DNA of 64,000 nucleotides from Paragordius varius (lineage: Eukaryota > Animalia > Nematomorpha), in the NCBI GenBank assembly GCA_964247055.1, contig OZ176050.1:6758001-6822000 (forward strand). The letters run 5' to 3'. The translations under genes and the position numbers were made by a program. Under the pieces are notes generated by a model. That model was not told the DNA's origin and did no database searches. It saw only the letters and a program-made list of their open reading frames with translations. Positions 9,827 to 58,300 of this stretch are shown piece after piece; position 1 is the first letter of the stretch, and each line of letters begins with the position of its first letter.

Positions 9827-11445
9827 ATGGATTGGATGTACAATGAATCTAAAAACTTGTTGGACCGTGAGGCTTATTTATTGGGAAAAACTATTGATAA
9901 AAACTTTTTATCTTTGGAGCAAGAAGGTTTATTCATATTTTACCTAAAAGAAAAACAATTACAATCCACGGTTAACGAAAATGCCCATATATACCGTAAT
10001 CACAAAGATGATCCTATGACATTGGTTGAAATGAAAAAATATGAGTATAAAAAACGTATTTTAAGTAACCCAATAAAACTCAAAAAGCTTAAACAAAATT
10101 TAAATAATACGACGGAATCAAGTACATAATATTTTAAAATATAGAAGACATTATTAGTGACGTCGATTTAAAAATATTAAAGAAATGGAAAAAATTAAAA
10201 AAACATTGTTTTTATTTTCAAAATATATCATTAAAAGAATTCGCAGATCCTCTATTAAAGAAAATATCTGACAATGACCCTTCATCAAACCAAAGTTCAG
10301 AATCCGATGCTGATAAAAAGGTTTTACCTTTGCAACATAATATATAAATTTGTAAAGTAGCTTAAAAAAATTATGCTCTTATATTGTTCCAATAGGAAAA
10401 ACAAGCAAAGAATATTCAACCTTCCACAAAACACAATCATAAAAAGCATCATTACAATAAAACGCCTCCTCGTCCTTCCGCATATAAAATTAGGTATAAT
10501 TCTTATATCATATAAATTTTTTTTGCTTAAGCTTGTTATGGTTAAATTAGATTTTTTTAAACATTTAAAAGCGTGCTAAGGGTATCCAGGTATCCAGAAA
10601 AGGGTGTGACAGGCTAGCTCCTTACCGTCACTGTCCGCACAGGACGACCCTTACCGCCTTCCTACGCTTTTACTTATCAAATTTCATATAAATAAAATAC
10701 ACTCATGGATTCATAAAATCATTTATTGTATAATACATATATAAAATCTTTGAACTAAATCGATATAAGTTATACAAATATTTAAATGTTAAAATTAAAT
10801 CAATCTTAACATTTAATTAACATACTGTTTATATATAAATTCAACTATAATTTATTAAATTATTACAGTTAAAATTATTATCGTCATTCTAGAATTATAA
10901 ATCTCAACAAAAAATGTAGATTGGTAGGTATTAATAAACATAAATTATGCAGCGTATTGGAGTGAAAAATATCCATTTTATTTTTTTTACAAACCATTAA
11001 GTCCTATCCCTATTTTTATTTATAATATTTGACTCATTTTTAGGTTATATTGTCAGAAAAGAAATTTATGAATTAAATTGTGACTATAAAATATATTATC
11101 GTAACACACAACAACCATATTCATAAGCTCAGGAAAAAAAATTTCCGTTTAAAATCATTTACTCTTATATTGTATTTTAATATTTAAAAAGCCTATTTTT
11201 TACGCCAGCTTATCTTTTTTTCTGTCCCGTGTAGTAAAGATAAACAGCGAAGACAGGAAAATGAAATCGATGCCGCTGAACTCCGTAAACAAATGCGCTT
11301 AAATGCCGAATGGATTGAACAAAGGAGGCGAGATATGATACGAGACGAGGAAAAATTGCGAGCTAGTGAGGAGAGAAGGGAAGATGAAATGAGAAGGACG
11401 CTTGCTAATGAGCTAGCTTTGGAAAAATTGACAAAGTCAGTTTGA
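9827..11445 (+). CDS. CWC25: CWC25-like pre-mRNA splicing factor lacking the conserved N-terminus (truncated gene or pseudogene)
   Basis: MDWMY...DREAYLLGKTIDK and DDPMTLVEMKKYEYKKRILSNPIKLKKLK match CWC25 as recalled (LDWMY...RDEYLLGRPIDK; EDPLFIIRKKEEEKKREVLNNPVKMKKIK). The last exon QMRLNAEWIEQRR matches EMMENAKWREEER. Exons 9827-10121, 10145-10320, 10396-10493 and 11235-11445 join in frame, with optional in-frame mini-introns 9927-9950 and 10208-10237. No KKSWHP N-terminal exon was found upstream. Confidence 0.7.
10581..10680. repeat. Unclassified dispersed repeat, partial copy B, in a CWC25 intron
   Basis: GGTATCCAGGTATCCAGAAAAGGGTGTG...CACTGTCC...GACG...CCTTCC resembles 31588-31670. 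Confidence 0.5.
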
Positions 11446-14170: not shown

Positions 14171-17100
14171 ATGTTACAGCGAAAACCTCTTTTAAAACCA
14201 ACGACCCAATTATTTTTATATCATAAAACCGCCACGAGTGAAGAAGACATTTTAACGAATAACTTTTTTGGATCAGAGGTTGAAAGCCAAAAAGAACAAT
14301 TATTACGTAATACAACTGGTGATGCTGGTAGAAAGCGTGCCAACAATAAAAGGAAATTGCACAGAAAATTGAAGTATCGATATTCTTCGATTCGTTCTAG
14401 TGATGTTTCTGGCATAAAATTTTTACGGTTTTTAACTCCAATCATACTAATCATTTTTGTGTTAATTATAATATTAATCATAGTTATTGAAGTTTTATTG
14501 ATTCAAAAATCGGTGTCCCAAAATTTGTATACACATTCTTCACAGTTTACAAATAAATTATATCAAGGATATAATCATTTTCCATACAAATTCAATAAAG
14601 TTGATTATGAAAGAGGGAAACGCCGACGAATCCCTTTGACTAATTATAAATTGTGGGATGATATTGGTGATTATCAATATTATGACGTTTATAAAGCGAC
14701 ACATGATAAATTAGATACTTTGGATTGGAATAATCATATATATTCACCTTTTTCAAATGTTCTTTTACGCCCCGAACCTCCACAAAATTTAGTTCATAAA
14801 AATAAGGTCTCCTCTTCACAACTAAATGGTAATCACATTTATAATTATATAAATTACAATTATAAACCGAGTATATATGCCAACCTAAATCAATACAAAA
14901 GTATATCTTCTCACAATCAACTAACGAAAAATATATTTGCTGGTCATGATTCGCCTTTATCTTACGTATTAGATCATAATTATCATAATCAAACCCATGA
15001 TTCAATAAGTAAACAAAGTCACTCAAAATCAAAAGAAACATTGTCTACGCAGCGATCTTTGATCTACAAAAATGCTCCATACACTATGTCAACCAAAAAT
15101 GTTGATATTCCAAGCACCTCATCAAATAATTTTGATATCCTTCCCCTTTTAAGTAAAGGGAAACGGCCATCAATATATTATAATTATATACTAATGAATC
15201 ATGTTCGCAACGTTATGCGAATTCAACAAATTTTAACCGAGGAATACCCAATGTATGTGCAAGTGAAGAAAATAAGCAATATAGAAACGAATTCAAACGC
15301 ATCGAAAATTGCTCAATCACTTTTATCGTGTTCAGGTCATAAAATTGCTCAGCCTCGATATTTATGTTATCCAGTACCATCTTTTTTGGGTAATAATTAT
15401 ATGTAAAACGAAAATATTCAATTACTTGAAGACTAATAAAACTTTGTTGTCACAATTCAAAAATTGTTTATGATTATTTTTTAAAATGTATATAAATTAT
15501 TTAATTTTAAATGAAATATATTAATTTAGTTAACAAAACTTCGAAGAATATCAATCGTGATACGACGGATTCACAATCGATATTACAATATAATGGTTCT
15601 TCTTCATGGCGATTATTAGCAGAGAAAATGAAAAATGATGTTATGTTGGGTGGATATTGGAAGCCCAAATCATGCATTTCACGACACAAAATTGCTATAA
15701 TAATCCCATATCGTGACAGAAATGATCATTTATTTCACTTACTCTCCGCTTTACATCCATTTCTCCAGCGTCAAGAAATATCTTACAGAATTTATGTGGT
15801 TGAACAGGTTAAGATACATAAATTTGAGATTTTTTACATTTTATATATATTAAAATAGTCATTTATTAAATTCATTATCATTGTAACCTAAACCTGATTT
15901 CTTATCGGCATTAGTTTTTGAATAATTTAACAAATCTAATTTTCCCATCGGGAAAGGTACAACATCCAATTACAAAAACCAAGTTTCGCTATATAAAAGG
16001 TGTGCCGTAAGACTGTAGTGTATATCCTAAGGCGCCTTGCCTTATTTTTTCCTAACCGACTAAAAAAATTAAATTGTTCACAAATAAATGTTGCCGCACT
16101 TCCTAAACTATTACAAATATTGATTAAAAATTTGCACCGATAAATATTTTATAAGTGGGTTAAATATTTTGCATATTAAATGCGTTTTTGCAAATCCAAA
16201 CTATTTATTAAATAAGAGTTATCGTTTCGCACATTAAATTCTAACTGGTTTTAACAGATGACAAATATTTAATTGTCTTATATTTATGGCCATTATTACA
16301 AAGGTTGGTACGGACACTTTCAACAAGGGCATGTTAATGAATGCCGGTTTCAAAGAGGCCTTTATGGAGGCCTCGGTACGATACGATTGCTACTTCTTCC
16401 ATGATGTAGATTTGATTCCAGAAAATATACAGAATATGTATTCTTGTTCAAACCAACCAAAGCACATGTCCGTTGCAGTTGATGAAATGGGATACAGGTA
16501 GCATACTTATATTGAAATATCTTTAAAAACAATTTTAATTTAGTTTTTTCCTTAAGTTAAACAAAACTATTTTAGGCAATAAAAAAAGCATTATTCACAT
16601 TTAAACTAAAAACTAATTTTTATCACTTTAATGGTGTTTTCTTTGAAAAATATCCTTGAATCATAAAAATTAAAAATATAATTTTACAAATTTTAAATAT
16701 TTTGTAGTTTATCCAAATCGAATAAACACTAATATTATAATCTTAATTACTAATATTAATTATTATTTCTAAAAATGATACCCTATGACGTATTTTCTTG
16801 AAATTTATTCCGTAGAAACCTTTTTATCAGCTGACAAATGAAAAATCAACCTTTTTGGAAAAAATAAGCGTTCAATGAATGACAAAATGTTTGGGCTTTT
16901 TGATGTTTATTATATTGTCAAATCTTTATACTCCTTCAAGAGTTTTTCTTCATTTCACATGTTAAATATTACTTGATTAATCAAATCATCCTATAGGCCT
17001 TTTAACTCAAATTACGTGATTAGGGGACCTAAGTTTTTTGTATTAACTAAACTTTCTTAGACATTAAATATAATAATGTCTTTTACTTTAATTATACTAT

Positions 17101-35371: not shown

Positions 35372-38300
35372 TTAAATATCATACATTATATTATTTATAT
35401 ATTCTTGGAGATCCATTACAATGTAATTATTGAGGAGCTTTTCTATTCCTTGGTCTTCTTCTAAAAGATATTATTTTGTTATTCAATTATACTAAATATT
35501 TTACATTCATATACGAAAAATTAAACGAAATTATAATAATGGGAAGTTTAATTATTGTTTTTCACCAATTCACAAAAAAATAGAAATAAAAATTAATTAA
35601 TATTAAATACATACATATAGATAATTACCTATAGATTTGTTATTAACATCTTGTTCGGTATTTAGCTGTGCAATAATATTATTTAGGTTCTCCAATAATT
35701 CCAGTATGATAGGTGAAGTCGATGGTTCGGTTGACAATTCCTAAAAATATATTTATAAAAATATATTAAGGAAAAAATATTATGGTTAAAGATTATAAAA
35801 TAAATTATAACGGTTAAATGTAAAATTAACATTCAATTTTTTTAATCACAATTTTTTATAGATAGGGAAATTCATTAATTAATAAAAATAATTTTTCTAC
35901 CAGCAATAATATTTTAATGGAAACAAGCGGGTGTCTTAGGCCGGGTAAACCCCATTTGAAGCAATTTTCCGATTTGAAAGTTTGAAGAGGCAGTTTAATT
36001 ATTTGTTTATCCGAGACACGACTTAAATGTGGTAAAGATAAAATTTTGCGTCCATATAATAGTGTATTTACAAAACATATGTAAGTTTTCAATATAGTGA
36101 ATGTTTGATAGAGGGCAATTTTATCATTTTTCTTAAAATGGTCTAGGAGAGTTTCCAAACATTCCACCATTTCGTAAAATATAATTTTATCTTCCTCAGT
36201 TTCAAACAATCTAAATTATTGAATTGAAAATTAAAATATATAGATTAGCCTTTTATGCAATAAAATTATTATATTTTTTATTGCAATATAAAAAAGATAA
36301 CAAAAGAATATTTTTGCAAAACTATAAAATAAATTGTTCAATGTAAATGTTAAAAAAAATTTATTAAAATTAATTAATTTTTTAACCTACTAAGTGGTGT
36401 TAATTATTTAAATATAAAAATCAAAAAAAGGCTAAATTTTTTAGTAAATATAAATATATGATATCATTTACCTCAACGTGAGTGCAAAAGTTAAATCATT
36501 AATTGATATGTAGCGTAAAAATGTGCTCCAAAGGTTTTGTAATATAACATTTTTTTCTGTATATGGTATGGTGTTTGATTGAATTTTTGAACGGATCGTC
36601 CAACTTAACATGCGCAAGTAACAATCAGCCATCGATTGAATAGGAAGGTTAACGTTCTACAAGGATTTAAAAAAATAATTTTAAGAAACTAACTTTTTAT
36701 ATTTTCCGCAATTATTATTTTTGGTTCAAAATTAGAAAAATAAAATATTAAAAACAGTTACCTTTTCCACCTCAGTGGTAAATAAAGCTTTCATTATTTC
36801 GGGACATGCGGGATCATTGGTTATCAAAAACTCAAGTAAAGATTGCCCTACTGTGACAACACTGGTCGGAAAATATTTGTGACTAGAACAATTTAAATAT
36901 TTTCATTATTTGAATAATTTATATTCTATAACAAGTAAAAGTAAATGTTATTTAATATTATAGCACAAACCTTGATAAATGAAACATATAAAGGGTGAAA
37001 TGCTTTATGGTTTTGCCAAAAGCAATTATTTTTGTAAAAAGTGCACTTTTCCGCGTCATCAAAGTGTCATTTATTAATATATTTTGGTAAACATATAAAA
37101 TAGTAGAGGTTGCTATTTTCTCATCAATGGGACAAAGCATATCAAATAATTTTATAATAGAGAGTTGCAGATTATCTGTTTAAAACAAATAAATATATGT
37201 GATAAATGTTGACTCAATAACAGTTCCAATAGAATTTTTATCATGTAAAAATTTACTATAATTTAGTGAAACTATAAAAGATTTTTTTTAATAAAATGGA
37301 GTAAAACAACTTTTTTAAAAAAACTTCATAGATATATAAAAGTAATATTATATTTAATAGAATTTGTGAACCAAAATACTATATGCAAAATATACCAATG
37401 TTAAAAGCAACATTCACAAGATTTTCAACAAAATTTTTATAATTATGGTTGGATAATATGGTTTCCGACAAAATATTTTTAGAGTCATGGATAATAGATT
37501 GTAAATAATTGGATTCTACCTAAAAAACAGAATAAATAATTAAAAATATATAGAATGTAGTCATTTAAATATAATTAAACCCATAAACAATTAATAGTTA
37601 CCTTGCAATTTTCCAAAATATCTTTATAAGGAAAATCACATTTCAACATTGTTTGTGGCAATAACCTAGTAAATGTTTCCAAATTATTTTTCAATTTTAT
37701 TTCCCCAATATCGAAGCTCTTTTCACCGATACTATTTATATATTCAAAAAATGTATTGATCAAAATTTCAAAAAGATGTGGTTGCAATTGATTGATCTTA
37801 CGACGAGTGAAGCAAACAAGGCTTTGAATAAGCTGGTCACACGATACCTATAATAGTGTAAAAAATATATTATAATTTTTTTAAATTGAACAGGTTCACT
37901 TTTAAATTAATTATTATGTATTTAATCTATATATCCTGTTTCAGAAAGCATGTATAATAAAATAACTTTAATGTCCGCAAAGGAACCAATCAAATCAAAT
38001 GTGTAAGTAATAAATCTTCGAATCTTATTGCCATCTTCACATTGTGTGCTTATATATTGACAAATTGAATGCCAAATCATACATATATATTTTGACATTT
38101 GGATTTGACAATCCGTTGTGTTCTGCCAAAAAAGTATTTATGAAATTAAATTATTATACAGGTTCTTGTCTTGTTTTAATGTCCATTTTCAAACTGCTAA
38201 TCTTATAAAAAGATTCTGATATTTGCATATAATCATCTAGTGGTAAATTTTTAATTGAATCACTTTCAAAGAGGTATGAAAGACTCTTTATAATAAGCAG

Positions 38301-41053
38301 CATATCTAAATTATAAATTATTATGATACATTTGTCATCTAAAATAATGTTTCCTTCCTTTTCCAATAACAACGACAATAAATCATGGGTAACTTTAACA
38401 TGCGTTTGGGTATCCCTACCTATTTCAGTTATTGAGGGGCATCTTTGAAGAATAAGGTTAAAATTTTTGGCATAATTGATGTTTTCTAAAATAATTTCAA
38501 AAAATTTATGCTAATTTCAGGATTAAAATTAAACATTATTTGGTTTCACTTTTTGTTGCAATATTTTGTGTTTGCAGGTTCTACATGTTTTTCGGGAAAA
38601 AACGGTTTTAAACCAAATTTTTTCGGTTCCAAAAAACTTGGTTCCGGTTCCAATCCCTACATATATATATGTCCATAAAAATGCCTATTATTCAATAACC
38701 TTACCATAATCAAATGGCTCCCAAAATTTAGGTATATTATGTTTGCAGTGTGATAAAACATTAACAAAAACATGTTGGATTATTTTAGTGGCATGTTCAG
38801 GAATCATTGGTAAGAATGTTTCTTCACAGGCACCTCTTTGATTAGAATCCGGTAATAAACCATCTTTTTCATCGATATCCATGTCCATTAAATCGTCAGA
38901 AACTATTTTTCCTACCGTACTTTTTTGATTAGATATGCGGGCAACAAATGAATCAGTGGTGTTTTGTGTTAAAATAGGACACACCATTAACATTACAATC
39001 GTTTGAAACGTTTCTAATCCTTGAGGAGTTTCAAATAACACCTTTTCAAGATAATCATAAAATTGTTTGCTCTTATTATCGGCTTCATCTAATTTATCTC
39101 CGCAATAAATTGGCCTTAAAGATTCTTCTATACTTTTCATAATTTTACAAATTTTATCGTGATCCGATGAAGTTATTCCATCAGGCGATATGAAATATAG
39201 TAATAAATCAAAAGCGCGAATAACAGTTAGTAAGCGTTTGAAAATTAAAAATTCTTCCTCTAAATGCGTTATATTGGTCTGTCTTATAACTTTATCTAAA
39301 CAGGCCTTTAAAATACTTATAAAAATTGGTCTATCATAATATAATACCATTAATGAGGCACCATTTAACGTAAAAACGTTTTTTATAATTCTCAAAATGG
39401 TTTCTAATAAATTTTCAATGGATAGATTGGTATCGGAACTTTTTATGCCGTTTTCATCTGTTAATACCCAGTGATCAATTATAGATCGGATGATAAACCA
39501 AAAATTGGTATATTTAAGAAGGGTGATTAAAATTGATGGAAACTGTTGGTCATCGATTTGAATCAAATACGTATCTAGATCAATAAAAAAGGAGGCAGTT
39601 TTTAAATAATTTTCTAAAACATTCAGAGATTCCATGAAATCGTGTTTAAAGTTTTCATTTAATGTAGACGGAATATTGGTATATGTTGCTTTAAATTGTG
39701 TTAAATATTCCAAAAAATTGATTGCTTTAATCAGGCCTAATAAGTAGTCTGAGTCATCTAAAGTTTTATTAGTCTTATAGACAAATTCTTTAATGTAATT
39801 CAATAATTTCATGAGAAATTCAGTATATATCAGGGCATAATTGGACACATTTTCATCGTATTTATGGGACGAAGAAAGGATTAATTGAATGATTAGAGCT
39901 TTAATAATATCTTTAGAATCATTTTTCATGCAATCGTTATCAATAAAATTAATAATATTATTAAAACCCTTTAAAATAATTTGATTAACAGCGTTTGATT
40001 GCCAAATTAAATGACAAAAAATGTTGTATAATCTTTTAGGATCAGATATAGGATTAGATTGAAGCATTTTGAATAAAAAATCATACAAAGGTTGAAAAAC
40101 GACAATATTCTCTGTTTCCGAAAGTGTTTTGGTGTCTATTTTGTCAAGCAACATTAATAATTTCTTTTCAAAATTTATAAAATCGTTTGATGACAGATGG
40201 ATATCATATAATAATGATTCCAATTCTTTTTCAATCTTTTGTTTATCGTTGGCAAATATATTTTCATTCTCAGACAACCTATTTAATCTGTCAATAATTT
40301 GATTTGCTTTCAATTTTCCAACAGAGGTATACAATGATAATAATGAATTGGATTTAAGTTCTAACGAAGGATCAATAAAGGTCAGAAGATGTATTTTATC
40401 TAATAGTTAAAAAAGAAGTAACCTTTGTTTAAAAGTCCAATATCATCACCCATAATTTTTTTGTTTAAATTATGACTAAAAATATTATTCAACTTTACTC
40501 GATCATATAATAGGCCAGAATTATATCTAAAATATTAAAAAGTTTACCTCGCTCATTTTTGAAAATGGTAGGACTTTTTCGAATTCCAATAACAGTTCGC
40601 CCAATTATTGCCAAAGAAAGACAATTATATTTGCCTAATATATTAAAAATTCTCACCTTGAACAATCAATCCGTCGCTAACAACTTGTTCCGATCTGATA
40701 CAAAAATTTTCCGTATTATAATCTTAAATAAAAAATAAGGCAACTTAATTTGGCTAGAGGGCTAAACGTAGATGTTTTAAGGTTATCTTCTTGAACATTA
40801 TTTGCAAAGAATCTTAAATCGATATTTGAAGGTAATGTAGCTCTATTAATATAAAGATTTTTAACCCAACACGGTATTTTCCTGGCAATAGGGTTTCGAT
40901 CATGTAACCTAAGGGTAAAACGCGTATTTCATCAACTATAACTGGTTCATCAAACTTAATAAAATCAACATTGGGACCATATTTTTCATAATGGCAAAAT
41001 GTTTCAAATAATAATAATTTTGTTTCTGAGGTCTCAAAATCCATAAGTGCCAT
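35372..41053 (-). CDS. VIRMA: Protein virilizer homolog (m6A methyltransferase complex subunit)
   Basis: The N-terminal VIR_N domain (LLLFETFCH...DFIKFDEPVIVDEIRVLPLG...SDGLIVQGKYNCLSLAIIG) is recovered only after removing tiny introns. Exons 41053-40866, 40842-40745, 40722-40657, 40634-40548, 40526-40499, 40475-40423, 40399-38705, 38419-38160, 38122-37957, 37847-37602, 37519-37396, 37175-36971, 36882-36762, 36656-36472, 36210-35901, 35740-35629 and 35460-35372. Identity rests on the N-terminus; the 3' end is uncertain. Confidence 0.8.
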
Positions 41054-41741
41054 GCGTTATAATTTTGCATACCTTTGGACAACTGTTTATGTTTTTAAAT
41101 ACACTGCAAATTGGGGTGTATAAAAAAATAACCTGATCAAATATATAATCCTTGATAGATTATGAGGAGTTAATGGTGCTTTTGGTTTTGGCCATTACAA
41201 GTGGTATAAAAAAGTTCACTTTTGTGGTAAGGGCTCCATATCAGAAAATAGCCAAATTTATGTAGATTTAAATAAAAATTTTATGGTAAAAGCTATGCTT
41301 TCCAAAAATATTATGAAAATATATTATAAACTACCTATAAGAACCAAAACAATATTTACAAAAAAATTAATTTTTAGATGTGACCTTAAAAAGTTTCAAA
41401 TTCTCTTGCTCGTGTAAATGGGCTTGTTCACTTAAAACTCAAAAATGCTATAATGCGATTTAAAATTTTAATATCTGTTATATTTTGAATCAACCAAAAA
41501 ATATTTTTTAAAAAATGCATTTTTAAAAATTTAATTTTTTGCATTATTTTGCTGAAGCGTACTTCATACCATTTTGAACCATGATGGAAATATAACTTTC
41601 TTATATTAGTCGTAAGGGCCAAAACTAAAAGAGCTTTTACAATCCTGATACATTTTCCTACCAGAATATATATATTTCAAAAGGTGGTTTTTGTGTTGAC
41701 ACTGTTATTTCCCAATAATATTTTACATCAGGGGTGTTGAA

Positions 41742-55350: not shown

Positions 55351-58300
55351 ATGTCTAGAGATAATTTGTCTCTGGAAATAAATAAATCTAGTCATCTTAG
55401 ACCAATAATAATTGATGGAAGCAATGTAGCAATGAAGTAAAATATTTTATATATTTTAGCCATGGTAATAAGAAAGTTTTTTCATGCAAAGGTATCGAAA
55501 TTTGTGTGAATTGGTTTCTTAGCCGCGGTCATGAGCAAGTTATTGTTATTGTACCACAATGGCGTACCGAAGGCTCAAAAGAGGAAACACCAATAGAAAG
55601 TTTTTGATCATATATAAATTAATATAGATCAGGAAGTTTTGCATTCTTTGGAGTCTACCAAACACCTTGTATTTACTCCTTGTCGTAAAGTTATCGTATA
55701 TGATGAAAACCCTGATAATTACAGTAAGGTTGAAAACGATGTATCACCAAAGAAAGAAAAATCTCTTCGATTGCGACCCCCGCCTAAATATAAAAAAATT
55801 GTATGCTATGATGACAGGTATAATATCAGTACCTCTTATTTATTTTTATTTAAGTCAATTTGATATCAAATTCAATATAGTATCTAACATTAAATATCTT
55901 CAGACAATGATATTTTTACGTATGTTTATTATGTCTTGCATATAAATATGTATAACCAACATATCCCGGAACTTGGCGATTGCATATTATTTGTCGTACT
56001 CTCTTTGTTGTCGTTATTTTAAACTCTCTTATTTTTAGATTAAATTTTAATATTTAAGGATATGTATTGATTATCTCAGCAATTTTTCTCGTGATGTATC
56101 ATGTGAATAACTCTAATTAATAATTTTAATTGTTTGTTTTTTAAAAATTATACTGTTTACAACCACTCAATTTTTAATATTAATTTTATAGTGTATATGT
56201 GATTTGTAAAATGCATTAACATTCAAGAGATCTTGCATTCTTATTATAACAAATTAATATAATTTTATCGGTAATTAATGTTCAACGATAGAATTTTTTT
56301 TAAATTGGAGGCATTGCTTATATTATAAATGATATTACTATCAAATTTGTTAATATGCTTTTGATAGACTAATTTTTGTTATAATAAGGATGTAAGATAT
56401 ATTAATTTTTTTATCAATATATTACTTAGTCTAATTTTTAAAATAAAATTATTATTGTTATTTATCGTTGATCATTTTTAAGTAAAGCATTATCCGGATT
56501 TGCTATCTCAGATTGACATATTTTTTTATTAATTACATTAATTTAAGAAAAAGTTTTTTGCTGATTCTTAATAAAAAAAATTTAAATATCTTGTAATAAT
56601 GGTGCGAAGCGAAAATGCTACATTATAAATCATATATTATTCGACTTCAGGATAATGAAATCGAATATAGCGGTTACAAGCTAGAAAAAAGTTATTATTT
56701 TTTTCGACTTTGTCAAAATCAAAAAATCGCATTTTTGTCGCACATTAGGCTGAATAAAATTATATAATGGAGAAAAACGCGTCAATATAATCATATTTGT
56801 TAATATATACCATCTTCTAAACGTATTCGATAAAGATTAATTTTTAAGTTGTTTTGAAGACTAACAAAAGTTAAACCTTAAATATCGCATTTTAGCGTCA
56901 AAATATCTTAAAAACTTGATATTAAGTGGTAAAATATTTTAATGTTTATCTTATATCATATATTTACTTATATATCTAGAGTGTACTCAATATATCACGT
57001 TAAAAATTAATTTAAAGCTAAAAAAAGTATTTTTTAAAGATTAGCGTATAATTTTTATAAAACTACCATATATTAATTATAAATAATCGGCTCATTTATT
57101 TGATTTGGGAATTTTTCGCCCCAAAGTTGTAATTGAGTGTTTAGTGCCATTTTGGTTACTGGGCTCTTCGGTAAAACTCCCTTACTCGTTAAACTATGTC
57201 GGTAGATCTTTTTTCTCCATCGAATTGTATACAAAGGTAGTTATTATATAAATATTAGGTGTTTACACCTCCGCTATGCTGCGAATGGTTAAATTCTTTT
57301 ATATAAACCTTAAATCATTTTTGAACGCGATATATTGGGTAAACTGGGATAGTTCAAATAAAATTCAAATTTTTTATCGCCTAAACACAAGTTTTTAGGA
57401 TTTTAATTTGAAAAGTGCGATTAGTTATGGTTCCTGTAAGACCTTCAAGGACCACTTGAAAAATTCTAAAATCTCTATCAATAATATTTTGTTTTTAGGG
57501 TTTCATGGGGAATATATTAACATATATTTCGTTGCGGCATTTTCTCCATTGTATTTAATTTAACCTAATGTGCGACAAAAATGCAATTTCTTGATTTACA
57601 CTTAAAGCGAAATTAACTTAACTTTTTCCTAGCCTGTTACCGCATCTATTACCGATATTCATTGCTTTGAAACTAATAGCTATCGAAGATATATGATATA
57701 TAAATGTGGCATTTTTGATCCCATTTTACCGCACAGTGTATTAACCGATCCACTTGTGCCATATGGCATGATTACTGAAATAAAATTTTTATAAATTTTA
57801 CCATTCTCTTTTTCTGTTACTTCATCACCTCTTTACCTTTTTGTCAGTTGACATATTGGGCTAGTTTATATCTTAGAGTTTCGTACATAAATGTTTTAAA
57901 AGTTATCTTCGTTAAAATTTAATTATCGGACATTCTTCTTATGTGTTAGATAAAAAACTTCCACAGTTTTGTGATTTCTCGAGTCTAAAATCGGGACATC
58001 TTTAAAACACGATTAAAACAAACAGCTGATATAACAATCCAAATTAATCAACTTTGCTGGTAAAATAAGCCTGAAAACTTTTCAAAGTTAAGTATTGACA
58101 TTTTCTAATCATAATATACCTTTATTTGCCTGTTGCATTAGCGATTTAATAAAATTTATATAAAAAAATAGCGGCAAAAAGTTAAAGATGAGGTTTTTTT
58201 GTATAATGCTCTCATATTTCTAACGGCTTAAGATAAATACTTTGAAGATAAATTTAAATTTCAAAGGGATATAAAATTACCTCAAAAGGTAATGGAGTGT

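Follow-up and report, generated by a model that had tools for sequence, protein, structure and literature searches.

Putative introns of 21-23 nucleotides in the 5' region of a VIRMA gene of Paragordius varius

The 5' region of a gene for VIRMA (virilizer) is interrupted by six segments of 23, 22, 22, 21, 23 and 23 nt, all of which start with GT and end with AG. The locus was read on the minus strand of a 64,000-nt window of Paragordius varius contig OZ176050.1 (the window being the whole stretch of DNA analysed; its GC content is 27.6%). At least five of the six segments are very probably genuine U2-type GT-AG spliceosomal introns that are cut from the VIRMA pre-mRNA. This reading, drawn from the DNA, has good support from the reading frame, base composition, homology and DNA runs made independently. 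The remaining segment, a 21-mer, is likely to be an intron as well, yet an optional one. VIRMA acts as scaffold for the m6A writer complex (7VF2 is the human structure), and its ARM-like body binds WTAP and METTL3/14.

Gene structure and reading frame

The coordinates, lengths and GT-AG ends of the six segments are exactly those given in the original prediction. The gene, from its 5' end, is laid out as follows.

40866..41053, minus strand: VIRMA exon 1, 188 nt, with the ATG at 41051-41053; matches Pfam VIR_N 2-53
40843..40865, minus strand: putative intron 1, 23 nt, GT-AG, phase 2; in six of six paths of 20-25 nt; GC 0.13
40745..40842, minus strand: exon 2, 98 nt; open in the spliced frame; alone without a Pfam or PDB match
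40723..40744, minus strand: putative intron 2, 22 nt, GT-AG, phase 1; obligatory in 130 of 130 paths of 18-30 nt
40657..40722, minus strand: exon 3, 66 nt; forms a VIR_N motif with exon 4
40635..40656, minus strand: putative intron 3, 22 nt, GT-AG, phase 1; its removal builds the motif; in-frame stop if retained
40548..40634, minus strand: exon 4, 87 nt; in the spliced frame; forms the motif with exon 3
40527..40547, minus strand: putative intron 4, 21 nt, GT-AG, phase 1; optional, may be coding; GC 0.14
40499..40526, minus strand: exon 5, 28 nt; in the spliced frame
40476..40498, minus strand: putative intron 5, 23 nt, GT-AG, phase 2; stop in the first codon if retained; one alternative
40423..40475, minus strand: exon 6, 53 nt; in the spliced frame
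40400..40422, minus strand: putative intron 6, 23 nt, GT-AG, phase 1; obligatory in 130 of 130 paths; third base polymorphic
38700..40399, minus strand: exon 7, a long exon of about 1.7 kb with the 548-aa ORF; 3' end near 38700 tentative
35372..38699, minus strand: further VIRMA exons, separated by conventional introns of about 61-363 nt; from a tentative ab initio model

Once the segments are excised, a single frame of 743 codons runs from the ATG at 41053 to the stop at 38688 and enters the 548-codon ORF, which bears out the proposal that their removal opens one frame into that ORF. Five of the segments have lengths that are not multiples of three, while the 21-mer (40527-40547) is in frame and free of stops. 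That the five are needed and that the 21-mer is optional, as had been predicted, is confirmed both by the frame and by the enumeration of paths described below. Retention of intron 3, 5 or 6 introduces an in-frame stop carried by the segment itself (in the case of intron 5, its first codon). Retention of intron 1 or 2 shifts the frame, and a stop follows within 17 and 9 codons, respectively.

The ends of the segments share several features. Four of the six donors are preceded by G, and five read GTA, GTT or GTG followed by A. The acceptors are TAG or AAG, located behind a T-rich stretch in this set of six. By eye, and among six sequences, TTAAT or TTAAC is seen after a T-run in four segments, about 7-9 nt before the 3' end.

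Chance, alternative paths and composition

Paths through the region were counted with the frame of exon 1 and that of the long ORF fixed, in the absence of stops and with at most eight GT-AG segments. When the segments are 20-25 nt long, the real sequence has six stop-free paths. When the 466-nt stretch was dinucleotide-shuffled 1000 times, no shuffle contained such a path; of 1000 random genomic inserts drawn from the window, 0.8% did. The boundaries themselves were compared with a set of 144 control pairs, made of dinucleotides no commoner than GA (44 occurrences in the segment). GT-AG is the sole pair to yield a path among these 144 comparably rare boundary pairs, and other boundary dinucleotides give paths only when one of the two is a very common AT dinucleotide. 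The frame-restoring GT-AG chain is beyond chance. A census of ORF-bridging segments of 20-26 nt across the whole window gave no excess of GT-AG over control boundary pairs; this census is uninformative on the point, since boundaries displaced from those of a true intron bridge ORFs as well.

The six paths vary only by use of the 21-mer, by 40657-40681 in place of intron 3 and by 40552-40574 in place of intron 5. Introns 1, 2 and 6 are common to all paths of 20-25 nt, and introns 2 and 6 to all 130 paths when lengths of 18-30 nt are allowed. Composition separates the preferred segments from their surroundings, the six having a GC content of 17.9% against 31.5% for exons 1-6. Alternative segments have an exon-like GC of 0.30-0.44. 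With the long exon as training set, a codon model gives the spliced exons 2-6 log-odds of +33.8 bits in the spliced frame, whereas the other two frames score -47 and -80 bits.

It is very unlikely that the exons follow a different path, with intron 5 placed at 40552-40574 (the 21-mer then becoming obligatory) or intron 3 at 40657-40681. Both placements do yield stop-free paths with GT-AG segments of 20-25 nt, but their GC is that of exons (0.35 and 0.44, respectively) and they lack a T-rich 3' end.

There is a real chance, though still on the unlikely side, that the gene has only five introns here and that 40527-40547 is coding, adding seven residues, or is spliced part of the time. The 21-mer is a multiple of three, stop-free and in phase, so that the frame is open with or without it, and it lies downstream of the conserved motif, where homology cannot decide. 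Its GC of 0.14, however, is like that of the other five segments and unlike that of the exons. In addition, it starts with GTAAA and ends with TTTTAG, and its 3' half is almost identical to that of intron 3. These features point to an intron rather than to coding sequence.

Homology to VIRMA

Exon 1 matches the Pfam family VIR_N (PF15912) at positions 2-53 with an E-value of 1.4e-9 and 38.3 bits (cut-off 27.7). The match reaches residue 61 of the 62 in exon 1, which is therefore coding right up to the proposed donor. Exon 1 also aligns, weakly and in colinear order, with residues 6-55 of human VIRMA. A word-indexed protein search with exon 1 returned no candidates.

The junction between exons 3 and 4 was queried with a 41-residue peptide made of exon 3 and the start of exon 4, read across intron 3. 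This peptide matches positions 97-122 of the VIR_N profile (E 4e-4). Against 177,635 PDB sequences it has a single match, to residues 103-127 of human VIRMA (E 0.022). The block aligned with the human protein straddles the exon 3/4 junction and is colinear with the match of exon 1 at residues 6-55. Taken singly, exons 2, 3 and 4 have no match in Pfam (E up to 10) or in PDB. Splicing at intron 3 (40635-40656) thus rebuilds a conserved VIR_N motif, as read from the spliced sequence. Use of 40657-40681 as intron 3 is excluded, since the motif shared with VIR_N and human VIRMA would then be lost.

The original prediction had held that removal of the segments restores the virilizer motifs. This stands at the exon 3/4 junction, the sole one examined directly by homology. 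The support for introns 1, 2, 4, 5 and 6 consists of frame and composition; no homology is detectable for exons 2, 5 and 6, and introns 4-6 fall in a region past the portion of VIR_N whose conservation can be detected here.

The body of the protein is of a different kind. A search with its 569 residues against 1.8 billion representatives found no relatives. AlphaFold2, run on the body without an alignment, predicts an all-helical structure with low confidence (pLDDT 39). Look-alikes proposed by a language model, which are leads only, are jelly-roll-type families for exon 1 and generic ARM/HEAT solenoids for the body. Because the body has no detectable relatives, the gene is named VIRMA from its first ~130 residues only. 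The protein resembles VIRMA in having an N-terminal VIR_N domain above the Pfam cut-off, with colinear matches to the human protein, followed by a long body predicted to be all-helical. It is unlike VIRMA in that the body is too diverged for any sequence match.

Independent sequencing runs and selection

A run search found five runs that contain the stretch, while five RNA-labelled runs share 0.00 of its words. RNA-labelled run X6 contains nothing of the locus. Contigs were obtained from three runs made on three samples (X1-X3). A single 2248-nt contig of X2 covers 38836-41095 and passes through all six segments. It carries 34 substitutions (1.5% divergence), and its only gaps are one of 3 nt at 39462 and one of 9 nt at 39953; each lies in the long exon and keeps the frame, its length being a multiple of three. 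The contigs of X1 span 40370-40695 and those of X3 span 40499-40839, in both cases without gaps. Segment lengths are therefore unchanged in the three runs wherever these cover them, X2 being the one that spans all six. X1-X3 behave as genomic DNA, since their depth over a conventional intron (38437-38631, about 189 nt) and over the upstream spacer equals exon depth, and since a high-copy repeat piles up in them.

That repeat is dispersed in the genome and occupies 41128-41300, directly upstream of the VIRMA start. Its word depth in X1 and X2 is about 30- to 100-fold that of its flanks, and loose ends are numerous there, as are short joints that vary. The labels of the runs deserve a separate remark. 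X3 is filed under organism label B, and over 39333-40839 its contigs do not differ from the window; the runs filed under organism A are about 1-1.5% diverged from it. This may reflect mislabelling or closely related taxa.

Samples 1-1.5% apart thus agree in these segments. It is scarcely credible that the 5' region lacks introns and that the segments arose as insertions or indel errors of the assembly: they are present in contigs of three runs and samples, two of which are diverged by 1-1.5%, and indels arising at random would not share a length of 21-23 nt and GT-AG ends. The check for assembly indels that had been suggested with the original prediction thus came out in its favour, the segments being there in the contigs and no gap occurring within 40370-41095. 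As far as contigs can show, assembly indels are refuted by the three runs.

At position 40420 of the window, the third base of intron 6, the window reads GTT where X1 and X2 read GTA, which is nearer to the usual GTA donor.

Among the variants listed for the long exon in the three runs, 14 of 30 are synonymous, against 7.0 expected under the same mutation spectrum (P = 0.002). This synonymous excess indicates that the long exon is under purifying selection in the spliced frame and speaks against the 5' end being dead. A dead end of this sort would be a decayed remnant in which the GT-AG chain is coincidental, the long ORF being used from another start or remaining unexpressed. Such a state would fit a body without detectable relatives and a locus that is found in none of the five RNA-labelled runs. 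It is nonetheless highly improbable in view of the chance tests with shuffles, inserts and boundary pairs, the coding signal in the spliced frame, the conserved motif rebuilt across junction 3/4, and the synonymous excess and in-frame indels of the long exon.

Other introns of the gene and of the window

Past the long exon, the gene has introns of 61-363 nt down to about position 35372, according to a tentative model built with a codon-score dynamic programme and by reading of the sequence. The introns at ordinal positions 1-6 are thus 21-23 nt long and the later ones at least 61 nt, in this one gene and with the downstream model tentative. On that model, the micro-introns appear to form a class clustered at the 5' end, the other introns of the gene being ordinary. 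If the downstream introns are indeed of about 61-363 nt, one spliceosome must handle both sizes.

Elsewhere in the window, a B4GALT-type exon on the plus strand (15511-16310; Glyco_transf_7N, E 3.5e-26) ends after a conserved ...VVEQ, where the ORFs of unrelated relatives end too. The best relatives of this exon are metagenome contigs with 61-65% identity and a GC content of 33-37%. It is followed by an intron of roughly 500 nt, and ordinary introns therefore coexist with micro-introns in the window.

Further candidates for the short class lie on the plus strand. At 9827-10144, an exon that matches the splicing factor CWC25 (Pfam E 3.8e-9) is closed by a GT-AG candidate of 23 nt, 10122-10144, which bridges 102 and 66 open codons. 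Two AT-rich GT-AG segments of 23 and 28 nt, at 55437-55459 and 55600-55627, also bridge open frames.

Proposed mode of splicing

We infer that at least five of the segments are removed from the VIRMA pre-mRNA as U2-type introns of minimal length, with intron definition as the likeliest mode of recognition. The first seven exons of the resulting mRNA would encode VIR_N and the start of the helical body. The recurrent TTAAT or TTAAC found about 7-9 nt before the 3' end is a candidate branch site, as judged from the six sequences. Neighbouring introns would probably be excised one after another and not simultaneously, because exons of 28-98 nt leave scant room for adjacent spliceosomes.

The original prediction had placed these introns near the physical minimum and took them to imply a remodelled spliceosome. 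The first statement is overstated, as the ciliate Stentor splices introns of 15-16 nt (PMC13644364). The second is not supported, nothing at this locus requiring such remodelling. In myxozoans, conserved pairing of U2 snRNA with the branch site and the presence of U2AF1/2 led to the conclusion that conventional U2-dependent splicing suffices (PMC13644364).

Comparison with known short introns

In a survey of 51 animal genomes published in 2026, myxobolids and Dicyema were the only animals with introns shorter than 30 nt, and its authors predicted that further lineages would be found (PMC13644364). Introns measure 26.2 +/- 1.9 nt in Dicyema (PMC2222250) and have medians of 22-27 nt in the myxobolid cnidarians Thelohanellus, Myxobolus and Henneguya (PMC13644364). 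In Gyrodactylus, a short mode of about 32 nt is dominant at ordinal positions 1-2 (PMC4040987). Among ciliates, introns are of about 25 nt in Paramecium and of 15-16 nt in Stentor (for the latter, PMC13644364). The dicyemids and protists cited as precedents in the original prediction were correct for their time, but the myxobolids, the second published animal group, were missing from it.

Like those of Dicyema, the introns proposed here are animal GT-AG introns of less than 30 nt, with a narrow range of lengths and situated within conserved domains (PMC2222250, PMC13644364). Nearly all Dicyema introns are short and uniform, whereas here introns of 61-363 nt (tentative) follow downstream and one of about 500 nt is found in a neighbouring gene. 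The mode of 21-23 nt is also shorter than that of Dicyema.

Myxobolids share with this locus the size class and a genome rich in AT (the GC content is 29% in Henneguya and 27.6% over the window), as well as a short 5' signal, 'GTa', and A residues before the 3' AG as candidate branch points (PMC13644364). In myxobolids, however, the median intron of the whole genome is of the short class, and the genomes are compact and poor in transposable elements. Here it is clustered at the 5' end, beside ordinary introns and in repeat-rich DNA, and the 3' ends keep a T-rich run and TAG or AAG. The length of 21-23 nt thus belongs to the dicyemid and myxobolid regime below 30 nt. Unlike in that regime, the short class is not the typical intron here, judging from the tentative VIRMA model and from the B4GALT-like gene.

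The architecture recalls parasitic flatworms (Gyrodactylus and tapeworms), in which a discrete micro-intron mode dominates the first ordinal positions of genes that have long introns too (PMC4040987). The short mode of flatworms is of 32-36 nt, as against 21-23 nt at positions 1-6 here, a size below the 30-nt limit discussed for animals. The locus combines the size of dicyemid and myxobolid introns with the architecture of flatworm genes.

The likeness to ciliates concerns the size class, the canonical GT-AG ends and the conventional parts of the spliceosome. In contrast to ciliates, the genes here are of animal type (VIR_N and B4GALT-type Glyco_transf_7N) and use the standard code. The published GC content of the hairworm Gordionus, 26.9%, is near the 27.6% of this window. 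The literature searched, hairworm genome papers included, contains no mention of intron length in Nematomorpha.

Significance

If its lineage is neither dicyemid nor myxozoan, the locus adds to the known class of animal introns shorter than 30 nt. We lean, by a little, towards the view that this is a third animal lineage, outside dicyemids and myxozoans, with a discrete class of 21-23-nt introns at the 5' ends of genes that retain ordinary and kilobase-sized ones.

With a minimum intron length of 30-40 nt, aligners and gene finders would fragment this gene, as they would many more in the genome. Gene loss would then look greater than it is, in a group from which many conserved animal genes are already reported missing.

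Should the reading hold, one spliceosome processes both extremes of length within a single transcript, and the requirements of minimal introns could be compared within one genome. The presence of the 21-23-nt class and of normal introns in one pre-mRNA would then be a natural experiment on splice-site spacing and branch-point placement, and equally on the order of splicing across exons of 28-98 nt.
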